Part shown: positions 5,418 through 29,193 of the stretch, one piece after another | Numbering within the stretch: the stretch's first letter is position 1 | How the letters are laid out: every line of letters begins with the position of its first letter | Source of the DNA: Setoptus koraiensis | Taxonomy: Eukaryota; Animalia; Arthropoda | Length of the DNA stretch: 64,000 nt | Direction: 5' to 3' | NCBI GenBank assembly: GCA_048013815.1 | Contig: CM106585.1 | Span: 21,576,001-21,640,000 of the forward strand | Made by a program: the position numbers and the translations under genes | Notes under the pieces: model-generated | What the model was told of the DNA's origin: nothing | What the model saw: the letters and a program-made list of their open reading frames with translations, nothing else | Databases searched by the model: none

Positions 5418-6456
5418 TTATTCTTCTGATTGGTCAAATTCACTATAATAACATGGATCACATAGGTAAATTTTAAGGGAGTCTGGGAGCGGTAACAAAC
5501 TAATATGATCCCTCCGCACGTATCTCAAAATAATGAACCTGGCCGGTGTTGGAGTATTGGTGAGATAGTTGAAGAGTTTTTGAGTATGAGCGTTAGTAAA
5601 CAGATTGAAGGTGTAACGAGTCTACGGTAGGATCCCCTGCATTGCGAATCTCAGATATGCAAAAATCTCTCCTCTCTTTTGGAAACCAAAAAATTTTTGG
5701 ACCAAAATGCTTCGGAAACGGACTGGCTGGAACCACTCTTAAATAGTAGGCAACAGAGCCCGAGACGCTATCGCTTTCAAATTCAGAGCAGGATGGCGGA
5801 GATCTGCCTTCCTACTGCGATACGGTGCTCATACATCCTTCAGTCATCGATACGGATTAGAACCGAAGATCTGCTACACCTCGTTTGCCACTCGGACAGA
5901 TTAGCTATCCTGGCCGGAGTTACAAATGGGGCCTGCCGAGGGGGCATGTCCGGCAGATTTATTAAGTGATTCCAATTTCAAAATATGCGCCGCTTTCGTT
6001 GGAACTAAATATTTCGCACAATACAGGGGGGACCTCGCGGCATATGTCTTGATTTTATGCTTACCTGGTCATATGCTTCAATGATCTGATTTCCTTGAAT
6101 CTAGAGACGGGATTAGTTAATTGTAATCTAACTGGGCCTTGTCTGTCGGGATCTCGATGCCTGAAAAACAAATATCTACCAGATTGTGAGTGTTCTATGA
6201 AATTTTCAATGAAATCTACAATAGTATTGCTACTGAACTTTTGCTTTGTTCCACCAAAACTGAAGTTGCCCTGACTGTGCTCTATTCTGGTGTGATTAAT
6301 TTCGTCATTCTTCTTGTAAGTCAAACTAAATATATAATTTTCATCTGAGCTGTCTCTAACTAAAAACGAACCATTAGGCTCTGATTCCAATAATTTTGCG
6401 GCGCCTTCTTTGCTCAATGGTCCCCAATACCAGCCACAATCTCTGAGACGATCCAT
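5418..6456 (-). CDS. SOCS7: Suppressor of cytokine signalling, SOCS7/Socs16D-like (SH2 + SOCS box), 2 exons
   Basis: Exon 1 (6456-6065) encodes an SH2 domain: CGWYWGP...GSFLVRDSSD...GRYLFF...QLTNPVSRF. Donor AG|GTAAGC at 6064; acceptor CCAG|G at 5539. Exon 2 (5538-5418) completes the SOCS box: SLKHMTR/FIILRYVRRDHISLLPLPDSLKIYLCDPCYYSEFDQSEE*. Splice phases match; 170 aa. Confidence 0.9.
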
Positions 6457-6949: not shown

Positions 6950-7717
6950 ATGACCTCATCAACTAGTTCAGACTCATCAAAATACATTGCTAGATACATT
7001 GAGAATTTCATAGATCTAGTAGAGAATACACCCAATGATTTGTCACGTAAAATAAGTAATATTCATGAGATGCAACTCGATTATGAGACAGCACTCAACA
7101 AACTGGAGCATAATATGACACGATTTAGTTGTAGGAATGGTCAAAATAATCAACTGAAACAATTAAAACTGCTATTCTCTACTCAGCACTGCTTGTTACA
7201 AATGCAAGAGATTAGCGACAACAAATTGGCAGTTATACAGGATGCTTTGGACCAGCTTGAGACAAAATCTAGAGAATTAGATCATGATTATAGACTTATA
7301 AGTGCTTCCTCCACATCAAACGATAACCAGACAGTCAACAACAATAATAGTACCGGTGGCGCTAACAGCAGCAACAACAATAATAATAATAGTAACAACA
7401 ATAGTAGTAGTACTAATAATAACAACAATGGTACAGGTGGCACTAGCAAGAACAGCAAAAACGGTTGCTCAAACAATAAAAATCAATCCTCTACATCTCA
7501 GACGACATCCCAGACTCAGCCGAAACGTGAATCAACTCCCGAGCCTACTTATTGTATATGCCACCAAGTTAGCTATGGCGATATGATTTGTTGTGACAAT
7601 GATGCATGCGATATCGAATGGTTCCACTTTAATTGTGTTTCATTGACATCAAAACCCAAAGGTAAATGGTATTGCCCGAACTGTCGCGGAGATAGGAGCA
7701 ATCAACCGAAGAAATGA
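6950..7717 (+). CDS. ING: Inhibitor of growth protein, ING1/2-like (PHD finger)
   Basis: N-terminal ING helical domain ([21 protein letters not shown]) and C-terminal PHD finger [33 protein letters not shown]...[10 protein letters not shown]. Intronless, with a polyN/S linker. Confidence 0.95.
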
Positions 7718-7888: not shown

Positions 7889-8833
7889 TCAACATTCATT
7901 CTTTACTAATTTCTTTAGCAAATATTCTCCGGCTTTGTACGATGATCTAACTAGAGGACCAGAGGCGGCGTAAAGAAAGCCCAGGCTCTCAGAAAATTCT
8001 TTCCAATAATCGAACTTCTCTGGACTAATATATTCTTTGACTCTTAAATGTCGTTTGGTCGGTTGCATGTATTGTCCCAATGTGACACAGTCAACGTTGG
8101 CTAGACGCAGGTCTTTCAACGCCTGACGTACCTCATCATCTGTTTCGCCAAATCCAAGCATTATTGAGCTTTTGGTTAGGAAATTGCTAAACTGACTAGA
8201 ATGTTCACCACTCTTCTTGAACTCACTTCCATATTGTTTGGCTGCTTCAAGCACCGCCAAGGATTGCCTGTAGCCCGCCCTGAGGTCCCTAACAAAGGGT
8301 GTGAATTTCTCTGTAGTTTCTAGATTGTGTGCATATACATCCAGACCCGATCGAGCCACCAGTTTGACAAGTTTCAGGTCTCCTTTGAAATCACCCGTGA
8401 GGCATTCAACCATCATGTCTGGCTTAGATAATTTGACCTGACGCACGGTTGCTGCAAAATGTTCTGCACCACCATCTGGTAGGTCGTCTCTATCCACTGA
8501 GGTCAATACAACATAATCGAGGCCCCACTGACTAAGAGCTTTGGCAACATTTTCTGGTTCCTTTGGATTGAGTGGTGCTGGATTTCGTGCGGTTTTGACG
8601 GAACAAAATTTGCAACCTCTAGTACATGTGTCACCCATTAACATTATAGTTGCTGTGGCGGTTCGGTTCTCTCCGCCGCCCCAACATTCCTCGATATTTG
8701 GACATCTAGCCTCTTCACAAACAGTGCTCAAATTTAAATCTCTCAAATCGTTTTTCAATCTATGATAATTATCACCTTTTGGTATAGGCCGCTTGAGCCA
8801 CTCAGGTAATCTGAGTCTTGCAATTTTGGACAT
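7889..8833 (-). CDS. LIAS: Lipoyl synthase (radical SAM)
   Basis: [13 protein letters not shown] (CX4CX5C), CTRGCKFC (CX3CX2C) and a C-terminal RSSY motif. A short upstream exon carrying a transit peptide is possible (ATG near 8930) but not established. Confidence 0.96.
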
Positions 8834-9086: not shown

Positions 9087-9361
9087 CGAAATGTAGCAAG
9101 ATGCAGTGTCTCGGCAAATCGCGTTGACTTCGTTGTAACCCAAGGTTACTTCTAGACTACACTACACAGTGTCATATATGGGTATGTTTTGAAGAGGAAT
9201 AAATTGGTCTTTGAAAATCATTTGTTTTATTCATTTATTTCAATAAATAACTGATGGTGATACAATAAAGTGTCCAACTGAATCATGCCGCTGAAAACAA
9301 ACCAACAACTTGATTGACGCCATCGGTCACTCTGTGGATCGAAAGGAAGGACTTTACTTAC

Positions 9362-10271
9362 CTTGAACTTTGATCTCTATAACTTTTCTGAGATCTGGTT
9401 CCAGTTTGTTCGAAGCTCTACATTCATACAAACCTGAATCACCCAGTGTTGTCGACTCGAATACCAACACCGAACCCAGATTTGTCTGGTTGTGCTGTTG
9501 GCGCTGATTCTTGTTGTTTGGTCCGCTCAATTTTGTCCAGGTTATTGCTGGTTCCGGTTGACCACGAGCCGAACAATTCACCATCAAACGTTGACCAAGG
9601 CCGATATGGGCATCTATTGGCTCTTCTAACCAGCTCATTTCAACTGAAATAACAAAAATATATCTGTCAAACGAGCTCTCATATACCTGTCAACTTAGAT
9701 TCAAATGAATAGCTGTCGCAAACATCCCCAATCGAATGTACTACCTACCAGAAATAACTAGATTGGCGTGTACACTGTCAGTACCGTGAATATTTTCAGC
9801 GATGCACGCATAGTCACCTCCATCTTGAATAGATAATCCGAACAATTTTAAAATCGATCGACTACTAGCACTATCAGTACTGTGCCTTTTCGATGTTTCT
9901 GATAGCCTCTTCCCATTTTTCAACCAATGAAATTGCATTCGATCAGACTGACTGCCTGACGCCAGAGCGCAAAACAACTCCAAATCCGATCCTTCATTGT
10001 AACTTTCGGCTAGATTGAGGGGCAATAATTTTGGTGCACCTACACGGATTGATTGATTTTACAATTGTGAGTTGCGAAAGTAGAAACGAAGTGTGAACTT
10101 ACAGTAAAGAATATCCACAGTAACATTCAATTGAGATAAACTAACAGTAGATTAATCATTAATTTTCAATAAAGTAGACTTACTAGACTTTGTTTTTGCA
10201 GCGCTTATTTCCGCCGCAAAACACAACAATGCCAGTTGGCATATAATCGCAGGCCAGTGTTTACTGTTCAT
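9362..10271 (-). CDS. Ig cassette B: signal-peptide exon plus two I-set Ig exons, Dscam Ig7/Ig8-like (sDscam-beta-type cassette or secreted 2-Ig protein)
   Basis: Leader exon 10271-10184 MNSKHWPAIICQLALLCFAAEISAAKTKS (not in the ORF track). Ig exon 10039-9749 (APKLLPLNLAESYNEGSDLELFC...WLKNG...DGGDYACIAEN). Ig exon 9643-9362 (VEMSWLEEP...CSARGQPEPAITW...DSGLYECRASN...LRKVIEIKVQ). All introns are GT-AG and phase 1. Confidence 0.82.
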
Positions 10272-10634
10272 CTTGAAAAATAATTAATCTTGTTTATAAC
10301 ACAATAAGTAGTAATAATTAATAAGAAGAATCGACTAAAATACAAAGAACTACATTAAATCAATATGACAAACTAGAGCAAGTCACGATTTTACGAAGCA
10401 TCGCAAGGGCCGATAGAGACCGTTAGAAGCTACCAGCTGATCCACTCACTACGAGGGGTGAATCGAAGAAAATAATCAAAGAGGCGCTAGACAACAACAA
10501 ATAAAAATGTAATTTTGATTTTCATTGCTACTTTTTATTGCTGGCTTCTGTGACTCTACGCTGATTCGATTACCACATTGATTACCACTAGATTCTTTGA
10601 AGACTTTTGATTTGTTTCGTTTTTGATAGCTTAC

Positions 10635-11538
10635 CTTGGATATCCACCCTGATTACCTTCCTGAGTACTTGGCCGTCCAGACCGTTCGAAGCTTTGCACT
10701 CATACCAACCAGAATGGTGGATGGCGGTTATCGGTATGTTTAAATGATCGCCGTTTGTTGTTAAAGGAATATATTTATCAATTGTCTCATTGTAATTATT
10801 GGACTGACCACCGCTTACTTTAGACCAAGTTATAGTTGGCTTGGGTTGGCCACGAGCCGAACATCCAATGGACAACTTGTGACCTACAGATAATTTTACG
10901 TCTGTTGGCTCGGAAATCCAACTGAGCTCAACTAGATAGTTTGATTGTAAAATTGTTGTTGATTAGGGATCCGATAAGTGTAAATGATAGAAAGTGACAA
11001 AAGATTAAGATAGTCTTACCAGACACAACCACCTTGGCTGAGGTACTGTCAGTTCCGAATGGATTCTCTACCATACAAGTGTAACTTCCTGCATCCTTTT
11101 CTTTTAATTTTGTCAATCTCAAGATTGACTGACGCTGATCTACAGTCTCTGTTCTAATATTACTATTTTCGTCATACTTCAATAGATCATCTAGCCTGAC
11201 ACCATCCTTTGTCCAAGAAAAACTTGCATCATCAATTTTGTGAGCGACAATACAATACAAATCGAGATCCGTTCCCTCGGCATAGCTTTCCAACAGACTT
11301 ATAGGCAGTAACTTGGGTTTTCCGGCTGACATTTATAGTACATGCGATACAAGGATTAAAACAAGGGATAATATGTCAAGATGATTGCCTTATTACACGG
11401 ACTGACAAATATAAAGTTGTTAACTTGATGAACTTGTTTCATACCTGATTTTTGTTTCGCATCAATCTCTAATCCACACAAGGTCACTGTTAGTATCAGC
11501 AACGATACAACAATTGTTCGTATCTGCTTTCGCTTCAT
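10635..11538 (-). CDS. Ig cassette A: signal-peptide exon plus two I-set Ig exons, Dscam Ig7/Ig8-like (sDscam-beta-type cassette or secreted 2-Ig protein)
   Basis: Leader exon 11538-11445 MKRKQIRTIVVSLLILTVTLCGLEIDAKQKS. Ig exon 11325-11020 (GKPKLLPISLLESYAEGTDLDLYC...WTKDG...DAGSYTCMVEN). Ig exon 10931-10635 (VELSWISEPTDV...CSARGQPKPTITW...SGWYECKASN...LRKVIRVDIQ). All introns are GT-AG and phase 1. Confidence 0.82.
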
Positions 11539-23907: not shown

Positions 23908-24010
23908 GGGCTGCTCGGCGGGCTGTTCGGCGAGCTATTTGGCAAGCTATTCGGCGAGACGGGGCAAGCTTTTGGCAAGACAGGGCAAGACGAGGCAAGA
24001 CAGGGCAAGC
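23908..24010. repeat. GC-rich degenerate 10-12-bp tandem array upstream of the chitin-binding gene
   Basis: Units GGGCTGCTCGGC, GGGCTGTTCGGC, GAGCTATTTGGC, AAGCTATTCGGC, GAGACGGGGC, AAGCTTTTGGC, AAGACAGGGC, AAGACGAGGC, AAGACAGGGC. Confidence 0.75.
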
Positions 24011-24697
24011 GAGTCGATGCGATCAATGCGCAGAGCGATCGCACGCCGAGATATTATATTAATATTAATCGCTAATGACAACAACGCGCCTACCCTGATG
24101 TACGGACATGCCCATAACGGAGACAAACGCCAAACAAAAACAACGGCCGCATACGTAACACTTGCGACGGACACTGCAACAGCGACAGCAGCGACAACAA
24201 CGCCAAACACGTTGGCCGGCCGAACAGGTGAGCCACGAGAGTGTTGCAACACACACACACACACACACACGCACACAGGCACAGGTGAATTCGGTAGCGG
24301 CAAAAGTGAATGAATGATGAACAGTTCATCATTATCAATTTTGAGCTAGCCAGCGCTGTCGTAATGGTCGGTTGTGGCAACTGTGCCAATTGTTGTTCAA
24401 TAGCTGTAATTCCGTCAAAAGTTGTCAGTTTGCAACACACACACAACAGGTGAATGTCGATGTGTGTCATATGCAATAATTAGTCAATTTAAATTTGATG
24501 CAACACACACACGCACACGCACAACATGAACTAACATCGCAGCATCATCATTTCATTAATAAAAATCGCCCGTCTGCAACTCCGTCTGAATATCGTCTGA
24601 TTCAAATATTCACAAATCAACAATCAGCATACAACAATAATAATAATAATTTAGTTTTGTAGCAATTAGTAAATTAACGCCAATCAACTAATCAATT

Positions 24698-26397
24698 ATG
24701 CCGGCCATATCAACAACAGGCACCTGTTGTAAATGGCGCAAATGGGCCCCGCATGTGAGCCAATCCGGCACAAAACTACTACTGTTGGCCCTTGTAATGT
24801 GCCTAAGTGTGCAACTAGTTCAAAGTCAATTCTTGTTTACATACGAAATAAACAACGAAGACGACAATCGTGCACCTAAATCATCATTGTTTGATCCGAC
24901 ACAATTCAAAATAGTGACACCATCTCAATTGCAAGCATCTCTACCGAAGCCGCCCGTTTCTAGCCACCAGCAGGCCAGTTTGGCCAATTCGGGTTCTTCG
25001 TCGCCCTCAGTGTCGTTCGCTGAACTGTTTGGGCCCGCTCCGCAGCCCCAGGCGCCGGCGTCCGTACAGCCACAGCATCATCATCACCATTCGACGCCCT
25101 CGTCAACTCTGTTGGAGCCCATTACGGGCGACGATGACGACGATTCCGGTTCTAGTCAATCAGGCAATTCATTAGTTGACAAATGGTCAGCTGCCATATC
25201 GTCGACAAGGCCCAGCGTATTGAGCTCGTTGCACGACCAGTGGTCATCCAACCAGCAACAACAACAACAGTTGGCTGCTAACTCGCTAACGACAACAGGC
25301 AACCCATCTCAATTGCAACAGCACCAGCAACACCAATATCAGCCAACAGCGGCCACAACAACAACAACAACAAACTCGCTGACCAACAATCAATTGGACA
25401 ATTTGTACCCTGTACTCAATCAACAGCAACAACAACACCATCATCACCACCATCAGCAGTCGCTGTCGCAGCAACAACCACAGCCACAACCCGTCTCACA
25501 GGCGCCCTCTTGGTTGGCCAACAGTGCTTTCGCAAACAATCAACACAATTTTCTAATTCAAATACCCAAACAACAACAACAGAGTCCTCTGAGTGTGCCA
25601 CAAACAAACAGTTTGACACCTTCCGTCCAAAATGACGCCTCACCTTACGCCACCCAAACAATTGGACCCGGTTCTAGTGGCGCGCCACTGGTCACTCCAA
25701 TCAGCTCTTACTATAGCTCGTCATCGACAGCTGATCCAAATGGCCAACGTGCATCGCAAACATTGTTAAGTTTAGCACCACAAACAACATCGTCGCCAGC
25801 AGTTACGCAATCATCACAACAACAGCACCAACTTCCGTTGGAGCCAATCAATCAAGCAGTGCCAACAGCAACAGCAGTAGCGCCACCTCCAGTAGAGCCC
25901 GTTGTAACGGCCGAGCTATTGAACGGCGCTAATGGCCAATCACCTCAACAACAACAATCAGCCGAGGAGGCGCTGCTCGCTTTCAGGCATCACCAACAAC
26001 AGCAACCATTGGCGAGACAACGCGAACAACCGTTGGCCTCATTGCATCACGCACAACATCAATCGTTGCATCACCAATTACAGGTTACGCCGGCCACAAT
26101 AAATCAAGGCCACCTGACGGAATCACCATATGGGCAAGCTCAGCAGACGAGCGGACAACAGCAGAAACAGATGATTGGTGTAGATTCGAGCTACTCACTG
26201 GGTCAGCACCACCAGAGGGCCCTTCAGCAGCAACAGCAGCAGCACCAACAACAACAGCAACAGCAGCACCAACAGCAGCACCAACAACAGCAACAACAAC
26301 AACAACAATTTCTCAAGCAGCAACAAATACAGGCGCAACGTCAAGAACAGCAGCAGCAGTTCTTGCGAAATCAGCACCAACATCAACATTTGCAACA

Positions 26398-26465
<68 letters not shown>

Positions 26466-29193
26466 TACAACAACAGCAGCAACAACAAGCACCAACGAAC
26501 GCCAATCAGCCGAGCTCGTCGTACCACGTTCTGACGCCAATCAAGAACGACAACGTGTCGCCGTCGTCGAACCACGTCATTCCGAAAGTGTCGCCGCAGA
26601 TATTGCAATCGTTTCTGTTGCAGCAACAGGATCAGCACGAGCGACACATGGAACTGTTGAAACAGCAGCAAGAGTTGAACAAGTTGCTGGAGAAGAGACG
26701 CCAACAAGAGCTGACAGATAAGAAGAGGCGCGAAATACGCGATCGCGAACAAAAAGAACGCTCGCAACGCGAACAGAAAGAACAAAAAGAACAGAAAGAA
26801 TTAAAAGAACGCGAATTGTTGAAAGAGAAAGAATTGCGCCAATTGGAGAAGCAACGCCAACAAGAGCAACTGGCCAGAGCTGAGCAAGCTAGACAGCGCG
26901 AATTGGCGGCACGTAAACAACAAGAGCTGGCCAATGCTCAAGAATTGCAGCGAAAGCGCGAAGAGCAACGCAAATATTTGGAATATATGGCACGCTTAGA
27001 GCAACAAGAACAACAAGAACGCGAGGCAAAATTAAAGAGAGAACGTGAGCTAGAGTTACAAATGGAACAGGAAATGCGAGCAAGAAAAGAAAAAGAAGAA
27101 TTAGAATATGAGGAGGCTCTGAAAAAGAAGCGCGCCCAAGACAAAGAAGAAGAAGAGCGCCAGCGACACAATCAAGAGCAATATATGAAACAGCAACAAG
27201 AATTAAGGCGACTAATTGAATTGAAGAAGCAACAAGAACAGCAAGACGTTCAACAACAACAACAGCATCGCAGACAACAGGTGAGTCAGCGCATTAAGCA
27301 ACAAGTAGAGGCTGAACAATTGGCCGCAGAGCATAGAAACAAACGACGAAAGTTGCAACAGCAACAACAACAGGATGACATAAACAAACGACAACAGCAT
27401 CAACAACAATTAGACGCAGCCAACAACAACAACAACAACAACAACATGAACAGGTTTCAGCGAACAAACAGCTATGATGGCGCAACGGCATCTTCGTTGT
27501 CATTGTTGGCTTACGAGGACGATCAATTGCGACGATCAACAACACCCGTAACACCGGCACAACAACAGCAACAGCAACAACAACAGCAAGAGGCCCATCA
27601 ATCAGCGACAGCGGCAACAACAGCCATTAACAGCAACAGCAACAACAACAACAACAACAACAATCAACAAAAGTCGCAACAGGCAACAGGTGAGCCGAGC
27701 ACACCGACACACACACAGACGCAGAGCGCTCCCTTCCGGTCGACCAGAAAGAGAATATCGCGAGTTTCTGGACAACAACAAACAGTGAGACAACAACAAC
27801 AATCGGCCAGTGACAAACAAAGTGATAACATAATCAGACAAAAGATACCCCTTTACTCGGGTCCCGGTCAGTACGGCCTGTATCGGGGCACTAATGAAAC
27901 GGCCGAACTGGCCGCCCTGTTGGACAGCATCACAAATGTGCTGCCCACTAGCGCCACATCACCGCCAACACCAGCTAACAATGTTACGCAATCGTATAGC
28001 AGCAGCAGCAGCAACAACAACAATAACAACAACAACGTCTATAGCAATAGAGACGGATCTAGCACTAGCAGTTCGGGCGGCTCTCACACGACTTCCGCTG
28101 CGCCCCTATCGGCCGCATCAACGCCAGCCTCGACAACGGCAACGGCCACAAGCACTACAACTCAGGACACATTAAGTAGCTTAAGTTTGAGCTCTGGCGA
28201 GGGTTCACTGTCGCCCCCATTGAATGATCTCAATGATAATTACATCATACCAAATTTGCAACAATTGTCTGGCCAGTCGGTGTCTGGTTACACGTCTACC
28301 CAGTCGCCGTCTGTGTCGTCGGCGGCCTCGTTGGCGCTACAAGATCAAGAGCCCTATTTTGACGATGACGTGCCCCGCAGACCCGCGCGTGCCCTGTCAA
28401 ACAAGAACAATCCAAATATTCAGCGAGCCGCATTGATGACGGCACGTACGGGCGTTATGACACAATTGCAGCGAACAACAACAGCTAACGGGCAACAGCA
28501 ACAACCAGACAACAACAACAGCGTCACAACGGCACTTGCCAGGCCGCTGACGAGCGCCCTCACTCAATCGAGCTCTCAAACGTCAACAGCCACTAGCAAC
28601 AACAACAACAACAACAACAGTAATCAAGCCTCTAGAACTGCACACATTGGACTGGCCTCACTTCCGCCCGATTCGGACAACGACGGAATACCCGGCCGGG
28701 CGGGTGTTGAGTACCCCGTGTTGAGCACGGTGCCCGTTACTAGCTTCTCTTGTTCGAAGCAACCATTGAATGGTTATTATGCCGACACAGAGACCGCCTG
28801 TCAGGTGGTTCACCTTTGCCAAGGAGGATCTCAGAGTTCTATATTGTGCCCAAATGGTGAGTTCTTATGGGCCCAATGGGGCGATCAGTGATTTGCTGTT
28901 CACCCTGAGAGCGTTCTCGAGAGCAATTGCAACGATTAAATTAATCCAATATTGCTATTCTTTTCTTGCCCCGAAAATAATGCCCCGAAAATAATGCCCC
29001 GAAACTAGGTACCATCTTCAATCAGGAAAAGTTCTCGTGTCAGTGGTGGTACGAAGTGAACTGTTCGAGGGCGCCCAATTTCTATCAACTCAACGACAAC
29101 CTATATAAATCACCACCCACAGACAAACAGCAGACGAGTTCGTCTTCGAAAGCGTTCAATTCAAACCGTCACAGCTCGCCCAATTCCTTGTGA
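24698..29193 (+). CDS. Large secreted Q-rich protein with a C-terminal chitin-binding type-2 (peritrophin-A) domain, CPAP1-like; 2 exons, 1447 aa
   Basis: Exon 1 24698-28856, donor G|GTGAGT, 152-bp intron, acceptor CTAG|GT, exon 2 29009-29193. Joined domain: SFSCSKQPLNGYYADTETACQVVHLC...ILCPNG/TIFNQEKFSCQWWYEVNC (six Cys), preceded by DGIPGRAGVEYPVLSTVP. Signal-like segment KLLLLALVMCLSVQLVQS. PolyQ tracts and an E/K/R/Q coiled-coil region lie in the middle. Confidence 0.9.
28968..29008. repeat. 14-bp tandem repeat GCCCCGAAAATAAT (about 3 copies) ending at the intron acceptor
   Basis: GCCCCGAAAATAAT GCCCCGAAAATAAT GCCCCGAAACTAG; the last unit supplies the 3' splice AG at 29007-29008. Confidence 0.85.

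Follow-up and report, generated by a model that had tools for sequence, protein, structure and literature searches.

A 64,000-nt stretch of the genome of the mite Setoptus koraiensis (GenBank assembly GCA_048013815.1, contig CM106585.1, positions 21576001–21640000; hereafter, the window) carries on its minus strand, at window positions 9362–11538, two small units that resemble the variable cassettes of chelicerate shortened Dscam (sDscam) receptors, each ending in a 5′ splice site. The locus raises the question of where such cassettes find the constant half of a receptor. The genome of 48.8 Mb consists of two contigs, the one that holds the window (C1) and a second one (C2). Examination of exon anatomy and domain homology revealed two sDscam-type cassettes that lack a constant region in cis, two constant exons on C2 that lack a variable region, and the same division in related mites; from these observations we infer the joining of the two halves, a role for base pairing in it, and separate promoters. 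On the sequence evidence presented below, we lean towards the reading that the cassette products are completed by trans-splicing to the headless constants on the other chromosome.

Two sDscam-beta-type cassettes and their relatives in the genome

The two paralogous three-exon units lie at 11538–10635 (unit 1) and 10271–9362 (unit 2), with 1267 nt between their ATGs. Unit 1 begins with a leader exon (11445–11538; ATG at 11538), whose product is the signal peptide MKRKQIRTIVVSLLILTVTLCGLEIDAKQKS and whose phase-1 end is followed by GTATGA. Next come an Ig1 exon (11020–11325; Pfam I-set, 3.7e-12), homologous by position to sDscam Ig1 and Dscam Ig7, and an Ig2 exon (10635–10931; Pfam Ig_3, 5.8e-13), the homologue of sDscam Ig2 and Dscam Ig8, which closes with ..LRKVIRVDIQ and a hanging G. 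A phase-1 GTAAGC (10629–10634) forms the terminal 5′ splice site, which has no acceptor in cis, and an AATAAA (10534–10539) stands 96 nt past the hanging G, upstream of the unit 2 ATG. Unit 2 repeats this plan with a leader exon (10184–10271; ATG at 10271; signal peptide MNSKHWPAIICQLALLCFAAEISAAKTKS; phase 1 end, then GTAAGT), an Ig1 exon (9749–10039; I-set, 1.6e-11), an Ig2 exon (9362–9643; Ig_3, 1.3e-14) ending ..LRKVIEIKVQ plus a hanging G, a terminal phase-1 GTAAGT (9356–9361) that reads as GK and a stop if left unspliced, and two overlapping AATAAA hexamers (9226–9239, that is 9239–9234 and 9231–9226) 123–131 nt past the hanging G. The four internal introns, 88–144 nt long, share GT-AG borders and phase 1, and the coding lengths of 697 nt and 661 nt amount to 232 codons (unit 1) and 220 codons (unit 2) plus one hanging G. 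The four Ig exons exceed the Pfam cut-offs for I-set and Ig_3; the lowest E-value obtained for each exon ranges from 1e-14 to 4e-12.

An initial annotation of this DNA had described two three-exon units at a spacing of about 1.27 kb, each with its own ATG and signal-peptide exon and two Ig exons joined by phase-1 GT-AG introns, and the exon boundaries read here agree with the span 9362–11538 and with that structure in both units. The motifs that it listed as shared (PKLLP..L.ESY.EG(T/S)DL.L.C, VE.SW..EP.D, CSARGQP.P.ITW and LRKVI...QG) could every one be located. The units are 45–47% identical in protein, and the duplication is therefore real and old rather than a chance resemblance. In a second strain, about 1% divergent and represented by two public DNA runs, the units carry 10 coding differences, five synonymous and five conservative or missense, with no stop and no frameshift. 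The same strain has seven single-nucleotide polymorphisms (SNPs) in the 188 nt of window positions 9153–9340, about three times the local average; this segment spans the tail of unit 2 and the region upstream of the neighboring lipoyl synthase gene.

Similarity searches, run exon by exon rather than on the joined 220- and 232-aa products, assign both units to the sDscams. In a per-domain phmmer search of about 80 chelicerate sDscams together with other Ig-bearing loci of this genome, full-length sDscams of ticks, spiders, horseshoe crabs and dust mites were matched in their first Ig by every Ig1 exon and in their second Ig by every Ig2 exon, at 26–46 bits among the matches listed (unit 1 Ig1, sDscam residues ~22–145, 26–40 bits; unit 1 Ig2, residues ~110–230, 34–44 bits), and the non-cassette Ig domains sampled in this genome reached at most 29 bits in the same run. 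Against PDB, the unit 2 Ig1 exon matched sDscam Ig1 (7y73) over its full length as well as Dscam1 residues 619–703 (Ig7), and the Ig2 exon matched, likewise over its full length, Dscam1 residues 716–809 (Ig8) and residues 101–193, the second Ig, of scorpion sDscam 7y6o; contactin and titin have higher whole-chain scores solely because many Ig domains are summed. The full-length sDscam of Dermatophagoides was matched by the unit 2 Ig1 exon at residues 30–113 (BLASTP, 35% identity) and by the Ig2 exon at residues 126–207. The cassette donors are in phase 1, as are the acceptors at VPA[RK]F, whether of the two headless constants or of the genome’s classical Dscam genes. The per-domain matches, the PDB matches and the fit of splice phase bear out the proposal that these are cassettes of the sDscam-beta type homologous to Dscam Ig7–Ig8, and on this sequence evidence both units are sDscam-beta-type variable cassettes. 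The best per-domain matches were sDscam Ig1 and Ig2 and not hemicentin, Dpr/DIP or Beat, families that the initial annotation had named as possible competitors, and no transcript linking the four Ig exons behind one leader was encountered. The name Hemicentin-2 on three of four cassette entries from the mite Aceria tosichella is an artefact of automatic naming, the fourth being called Dscam2-like.

A genome-wide search with the two unit 2 Ig exons as queries found about 15 cassettes at nine loci on both contigs: on C1 at 0.58, 6.12, 9.95, 14.64 (two), 21.585 (the two of the window) and 23.16–23.17 (two) Mb, and on C2 at 6.65, 11.17 (three) and 22.33 (two) Mb. All six C2 cassettes lie on the minus strand, as do both headless constants, and the C1 cassettes are mixed in strand; the uniformity on C2 may go back to one ancestral locus whose parts were separated without inversions. 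In 13 of 13 cassettes with a placeable 3′ end, the Ig2 exon ends in ..[LI][RK]K.[IVF].[VI].[VI][QR] followed by the hanging G, and the terminal donor G|GTA[AG]G is invariant (13/13) among paralogs only ~45% identical in protein, with variable bases beyond it. Retention of an unchanged GGTAAG at this level of divergence argues for a working 5′ splice site and not for a conserved Gly-Lys C-terminus. An AATAAA follows at +96 to +192 in 11 of the 12 non-duplicate tails, where 0.17 would be expected per tail (binomial P ~1e-8). Half of these tails (6/12) also contain a further GGTAAG, a pseudo-5′ splice site expected 0.015 times per tail; the two cassettes of the window show it only in degenerate or GGTAAT-like form.

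Constant exons without variable regions

The constant half was sought with a genome-wide FN3 scan and a constant-region protein search, neither of which found an FN3 or constant-type exon in or near the window. The FN3 match on C1 nearest to the window is ~2 Mb away on the opposite strand, and the genome contains only two sDscam-type constant exons, both on C2 (weaker matches of the same search uninspected); two further matches, at C1:5.95 Mb and C2:2.88 Mb, are each immediately preceded by an Ig8-type exon and belong to genes of the classical Dscam-like kind. The initial annotation had expected Ig9-FN3-TM exons farther along the minus strand, an expectation contradicted by the confinement of sDscam-type constants to C2. 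An intronless lipoyl synthase gene (7889–8833, minus; open reading frame with Pfam Radical_SAM and LIAS_N), transcribed in the direction of the cassettes, begins ~530 nt past unit 2 and bounds the array on its 3′ side, and other genes follow it. A canonical cis array, in which the transcript of each leader runs on to shared constants beyond the window on the minus strand, would account for the phase-1 donors and the tandem layout, both of which resemble canonical sDscam-beta clusters (PMC4835542). It is unsupported because unrelated genes lie downstream, because each unit has its own AATAAA, and because the constants are restricted to C2. Of the clustered array originally proposed, the two tandem cassettes thus stand and the run-on in cis to shared constant exons does not; that model is effectively refuted by the constant search and could be revived only by a misassembled constant.

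The remaining neighbors are ordinary: a PHD-finger gene of the ING family (6950–7717, plus strand), which is intronless and carries a long insert rich in Asn and Ser, and an SH2-domain reading frame of SOCS-like appearance (6061–6456, minus strand). Farther along, window positions 24001–28000 show strong strand asymmetry (AT skew up to 0.53, GC skew −0.22), probably reflecting a low-complexity or repeat stretch; several high-scoring background windows of the pairing scan described below fall in it.

The two sDscam-type constants are single open frames on the minus strand at C2:17693135–17695044 (17.69 Mb) and C2:7519957–7522253 (7.52 Mb), of 644 and 768 codons, which encode Ig3, three FN3 domains, a transmembrane segment and a cytoplasmic tail. 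Both begin at a phase-1 AG acceptor exactly at V-P-A-[RK]-F, an intron position identical to that of the classical Dscam genes here, and their first codons read (G)TA/TG-VPA[RK]F. In neither does an ATG occur before the middle of Ig3, and neither has a signal peptide. No Ig1- or Ig2-type exon was found within 10 kb upstream of either constant; the upstream neighbor is a Dpr-like gene in one case and an opposite-strand gene ~5.6 kb away in the other. Both C2 exons thus lack a variable region of their own, as does one constant of the spider mite Tetranychus urticae. Joining a cassette to a constant in silico yields ..LRKVIEIKVQ-V-VPARFNEKF.., and the same junction reads ..LRKxIxVxV-VPA[RK]F.. 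in complete sDscams from Halotydeus (LRKTIKVSVVVPAKFETKF), Dermatophagoides and spiders.

A search for leader exons upstream of the constants found none in the loci of four relatives, and in this genome one unconserved candidate. This exon, MPQTLMVACIGSVCPCGQLVSAASWLA, is hydrophobic and leader-like, has a GTGAGC donor in phase 1 and lies 682–601 nt upstream of the C2:17.69 Mb acceptor, upstream of the docking-like site described below; it could be a cis first exon of that constant’s pre-mRNA. The addition of a spliced leader to the constant was rejected as a source of its missing 5′ end, since Ig3 would stay truncated and would still lack a signal peptide; spliced-leader trans-splicing is also not known in chelicerates. 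Both constants also have in common a palindromic TAATGA/TCATTA element, at about −587 and about −1400 nt, that has the look of a homeodomain-binding site and may be a common neuronal enhancer.

The separation of the two halves recurs in related, eriophyoid-like mites, Aceria tosichella among them. Assemblies from Logan, JGI and ENA contain ~39 close homologs of the C2:17.69 Mb constant (54–63% identity, 560–622 aa), one of them named for Aceria tosichella, and all begin at or past VPA[RK]F, with the N-terminal part conserved in the relatives’ open frames. These homologs make it probable that the genome studied here belongs to an eriophyoid-like mite. On the contigs of three relatives the constant follows a Brix gene and a small coiled-coil gene at a distance of ~1.1–1.5 kb and no cassette is present, and the second-type constants of relatives are likewise headless. 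The relatives’ cassettes occupy other contigs; one such locus is a tandem pair with the same 1.3-kb spacing and a convergent gene ~600 nt farther on, and it shows no synteny with lipoyl synthase. The terminal G|GTAAGT is present in 3/3 of one relative’s cassettes, with AATAAA at +71 to +142, and reading past the donor gives only the short extensions GK, GKLMT and GKSRITH. Recurrence of the same split in relatives indicates that it is old and conserved and not an accident of this assembly. Upstream of the relatives’ second-type constants, four to six ACC[AG]AC motifs cluster 140–200 nt before the acceptor; these are the only such clusters per locus on the constant’s strand, and one locus has a weaker three-motif cluster on the opposite strand.

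Aceria tosichella is represented by four UniRef entries that consist of leader, Ig1 and Ig2 with the internal introns removed. They combine two leaders with two cassettes, a two-by-two pattern that suggests alternative cis-splicing of a leader to either tandem cassette or enumeration of paths by an assembler. Judging from this isoform pattern and from their accession series, the entries are probably derived from transcripts, and they probably show that stand-alone cassette RNAs exist. Such RNAs fit a gene for a secreted two-Ig protein and, equally, the precursors of an inefficient trans-splicing reaction.

Candidate pairing sites and the weighing of alternative readings

We propose that the units of the window are two stand-alone sDscam-beta variable mini-genes, each presumably with its own promoter. 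Cassette RNA and constant pre-mRNA would be transcribed separately and then joined by spliceosomal trans-splicing, and base pairing between a selector in the cassette tail and a docking site ~350–410 nt before the constant acceptor would bring the two pre-mRNAs together. The combinatorial output could reach ~15 × 2 membrane receptors, and cassette RNA that escapes trans-splicing would be polyadenylated and yield a secreted two-Ig protein ending ..QGK. Since each cassette has its own poly(A) signal, joining would be obligatory, and for the cassettes of the window it would be inter-chromosomal. We favor this mechanism because the donors are invariant, the fit of phase and junction is exact, and the complementarity between selectors and docking site is top-ranked in two species. 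The broader proposition that the whole short-Dscam family of this mite, and apparently of its eriophyoid-like relatives, is physically split, so that every receptor arises by obligatory and often inter-chromosomal trans-splicing while unjoined RNAs make secreted proteins, is in our judgment evenly balanced between belief and doubt.

The candidate docking site was recognized as a pile-up of short complementary matches 350–410 nt upstream of the C2:17.69 Mb acceptor. Its reverse complement resembles the segment from +28 to +125 in several cassette tails, with z-scores of 3.4–6.8 for units 1 and 2 and four other cassettes, scores that 0 or 1 of 200 shuffles reach. The selector-like segment of unit 1 (10548–10596, minus strand; +39 to +87 after the donor), which is complementary to this site, gave z = 3.4 with 1/200 shuffles and a weak duplex in RNAduplex (z = −0.9); that of unit 2 (9274–9334, minus strand; +28 to +88), also complementary to it, gave z = 3.7 with 0/200 shuffles and an RNAduplex z of −6.2 against shuffles. 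We scored pairing, adjusted for GC content, in 7072 windows that covered the regions upstream of both constants and, on both strands, the whole window analyzed here. The docking window came first among the ~1000 windows upstream of the two constants. The core of the site, GCTGACCAACTTGA, is the best local match between the upstream region in this genome and those of the relatives, where it stands 120–190 nt ahead of the acceptor, within the most strongly conserved block in a comparison of two relatives. In one relative, the region just upstream of the constant occupies ranks 1–5 of 4419 windows for complementarity to three cassette tails. A BLAST search of the docking site against the whole genome returned only the self-match, and the selector segments aligned too poorly in MAFFT to support a covariance model. 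An 11-mer of the core, GACCAACTTGA, recurs ~2884 nt upstream of the C2:7.52 Mb acceptor within a 646-aa open frame of the Dpr-like neighbor. The chance expectation for one strand over 10 kb is ~0.002 occurrences, and the sequences flanking this 11-mer pair unconvincingly with the cassette tails. Taken together, the docking and selector statistics are suggestive of pairing and not decisive.

Several results weigh against trans-splicing. In the scan of this genome the docking window ranks fifth of 7072 overall and not first, and the scan z-scores are only 2.5 for unit 1 and 2.4 for unit 2. The cross-species match of the 14-nt core sits no higher than the upper margin of the shuffle scores (z ~2–3), the motif is quasi-palindromic so that its orientation is not clean, and a more permissive gapped pairing score produced long spurious alignments without specificity for the docking site. 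Similarity search and ACC[AG]AC clustering found no docking site for the second constant, and three of the second-strain SNPs fall inside the predicted selector of unit 2. Among sequence records, a search of public runs found three that match this genome and no RNA run among them: all are DNA contigs, co-linear with it and without joints or informative loose ends; a joined cassette-constant protein (>622 aa, >50% identity) was not found among relatives in databases; the Aceria constant entry begins at an internal Met; and all four Aceria cassette entries end in ..RGKL or ..RGKY, with the last donor unspliced. The in-frame stops soon past the donor and the conserved poly(A) signals also suit a secreted product.

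These last points lead to a different account, in which the cassettes are independent genes for small secreted proteins of the form SP-Ig-Ig-GK, derived from sDscam and joined to nothing, with the terminal GTAAGT unused and the constants expressed in some other way or used in another role. If the last donor is ignored, both units do give an open frame with signal peptide, stop and AATAAA. The mRNA form is on record in Aceria tosichella, whose four entries have it, rather than in S. koraiensis itself; in most cassettes an in-frame stop follows within 2–7 codons of the donor, an AATAAA lies 70–190 nt downstream in 14 of 15 non-duplicate tails (11/12 from this genome, 3/3 from the relative), and databases yielded no chimeric cassette-constant protein. 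Selection on the protein alone, however, would not hold GGTAAG(T) invariant in at least 16 cassettes that are ~45% identical, and a strong 5′ splice site just before a poly(A) site is normally harmful to expression. This account would also leave two conserved constants without start codon or signal peptide and the mite without any complete sDscam, and the transcripts to which it appeals would look identical if they were precursors for trans-splicing. We therefore regard secreted two-Ig proteins as the sole product of the cassettes as unlikely, while giving the idea real weight.

Two further explanations fare much worse. Scattered cassettes with no constants in cis might be the decaying pseudogene remnants of a broken-up sDscam cluster, but all six exons of the window are intact with consensus splice sites, the frames have stayed open in paralogs 45% identical, no disabling change separates the strains, and the organization is kept in distant relatives, with cassette transcripts on record in Aceria; decay is thus very improbable. 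Alternatively, the terminal donor might splice to a short 3′ exon close by, located in the ~100 nt that precede the poly(A) signal, and in the unit 2 tail a plausible acceptor, ttgttttcag at +70, would add Ala-Ala-stop. A comparable acceptor is not conserved in other cassettes, the Aceria entries read straight past the donor, and the implied intron of ~70 nt would be shorter than the four cassette introns, all of which makes this equally hard to credit. Trans-splicing to the C2 constants remains the reading that we prefer.

Comparison with known systems and significance

The closest precedent is T. urticae, in which every sDscam-beta cassette was shown experimentally to be trans-spliced to the constants of other clusters within one locus (Hou et al. 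2022, Sci Adv, PMC9258826). There, a selector ~43 nt past the cassette 5′ splice site pairs with a dock upstream of the constant exon, ~60% of mRNAs are estimated to be trans-spliced, and one constant, beta4, has no variable region of its own (PMC9258826). The locus studied here resembles that system in its leader plus two-Ig cassettes, its single large constant exon, the existence of headless constants, and the positions of the candidate selectors, tens of nt past the donor, and of a candidate dock upstream of the constant. The layouts differ: in T. urticae a single locus houses all 33 cassettes and every constant, and cassettes lie in cis to three of the four constants (PMC9258826), whereas in S. 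koraiensis no cassette has a constant in cis and the nine loci are spread over both chromosomes among unrelated flanking genes. The standing of the joining reaction differs as well, being experimental in T. urticae and here read from sequence alone. If our moderately held reading is correct, what is new is that trans-splicing of the T. urticae type would extend to complete physical separation of the two halves.

With canonical sDscam-beta clusters (Yue et al. 2016, PMC4835542; Cao et al. 2018, PMC5775551), the window shares cassette architecture, Ig7–8 homology, alternative 5′ units and a phase-compatible junction to Ig3-FN3-TM; those clusters place tens of cassettes directly upstream of shared constants in one transcription unit, a cis layout absent here. 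Vertebrate clustered protocadherins similarly join variable 5′ units that have their own promoters to constant exons, and low-level trans-splicing between their clusters has been reported (as cited in PMC9258826), but they belong to an unrelated protein family, use a single large variable exon and are strictly cis-clustered. A secreted SP-Ig-Ig-GK product, if made, would be analogous to crustacean soluble Dscam (PMC5915466), a secreted ectodomain fragment that exists beside membrane forms; the crustacean proteins differ in having many more domains and in coming from full-length genes by alternative splicing or shedding. In Drosophila, mod(mdg4) and lola join independent pre-mRNAs at normal splice sites (cited in PMC9258826), as we propose here. 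Unlike the arrangement in S. koraiensis, the shared part of those genes is the 5′ half, the variable exons supply the 3′ halves, and all lie in one locus. In mod(mdg4), trans-splicing is reportedly promoted by a pseudo-5′ splice site that lies past the donor and binds U1, and the recurrence of GGTAAG in the cassette tails recalls this enhancer.

Protein-coding trans-splicing between separate genes is rare in animals, and in its best cases, mod(mdg4), lola and the sDscams of T. urticae, each system occupies a single locus in which cis transcription is also possible. Should the cassettes encode only secreted two-Ig proteins, they would represent a new fate for Dscam variable domains, and the headless constants would be left unexplained. 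If instead the separated halves are joined as we propose, trans-splicing can be the sole route to an essential neuronal protein, and genome streamlining can dissolve a protocadherin-like cluster while its combinatorial logic is kept. The cassettes and constants of S. koraiensis, with their short tails and small docking element, would then provide a natural compact system for learning how two pre-mRNAs meet.

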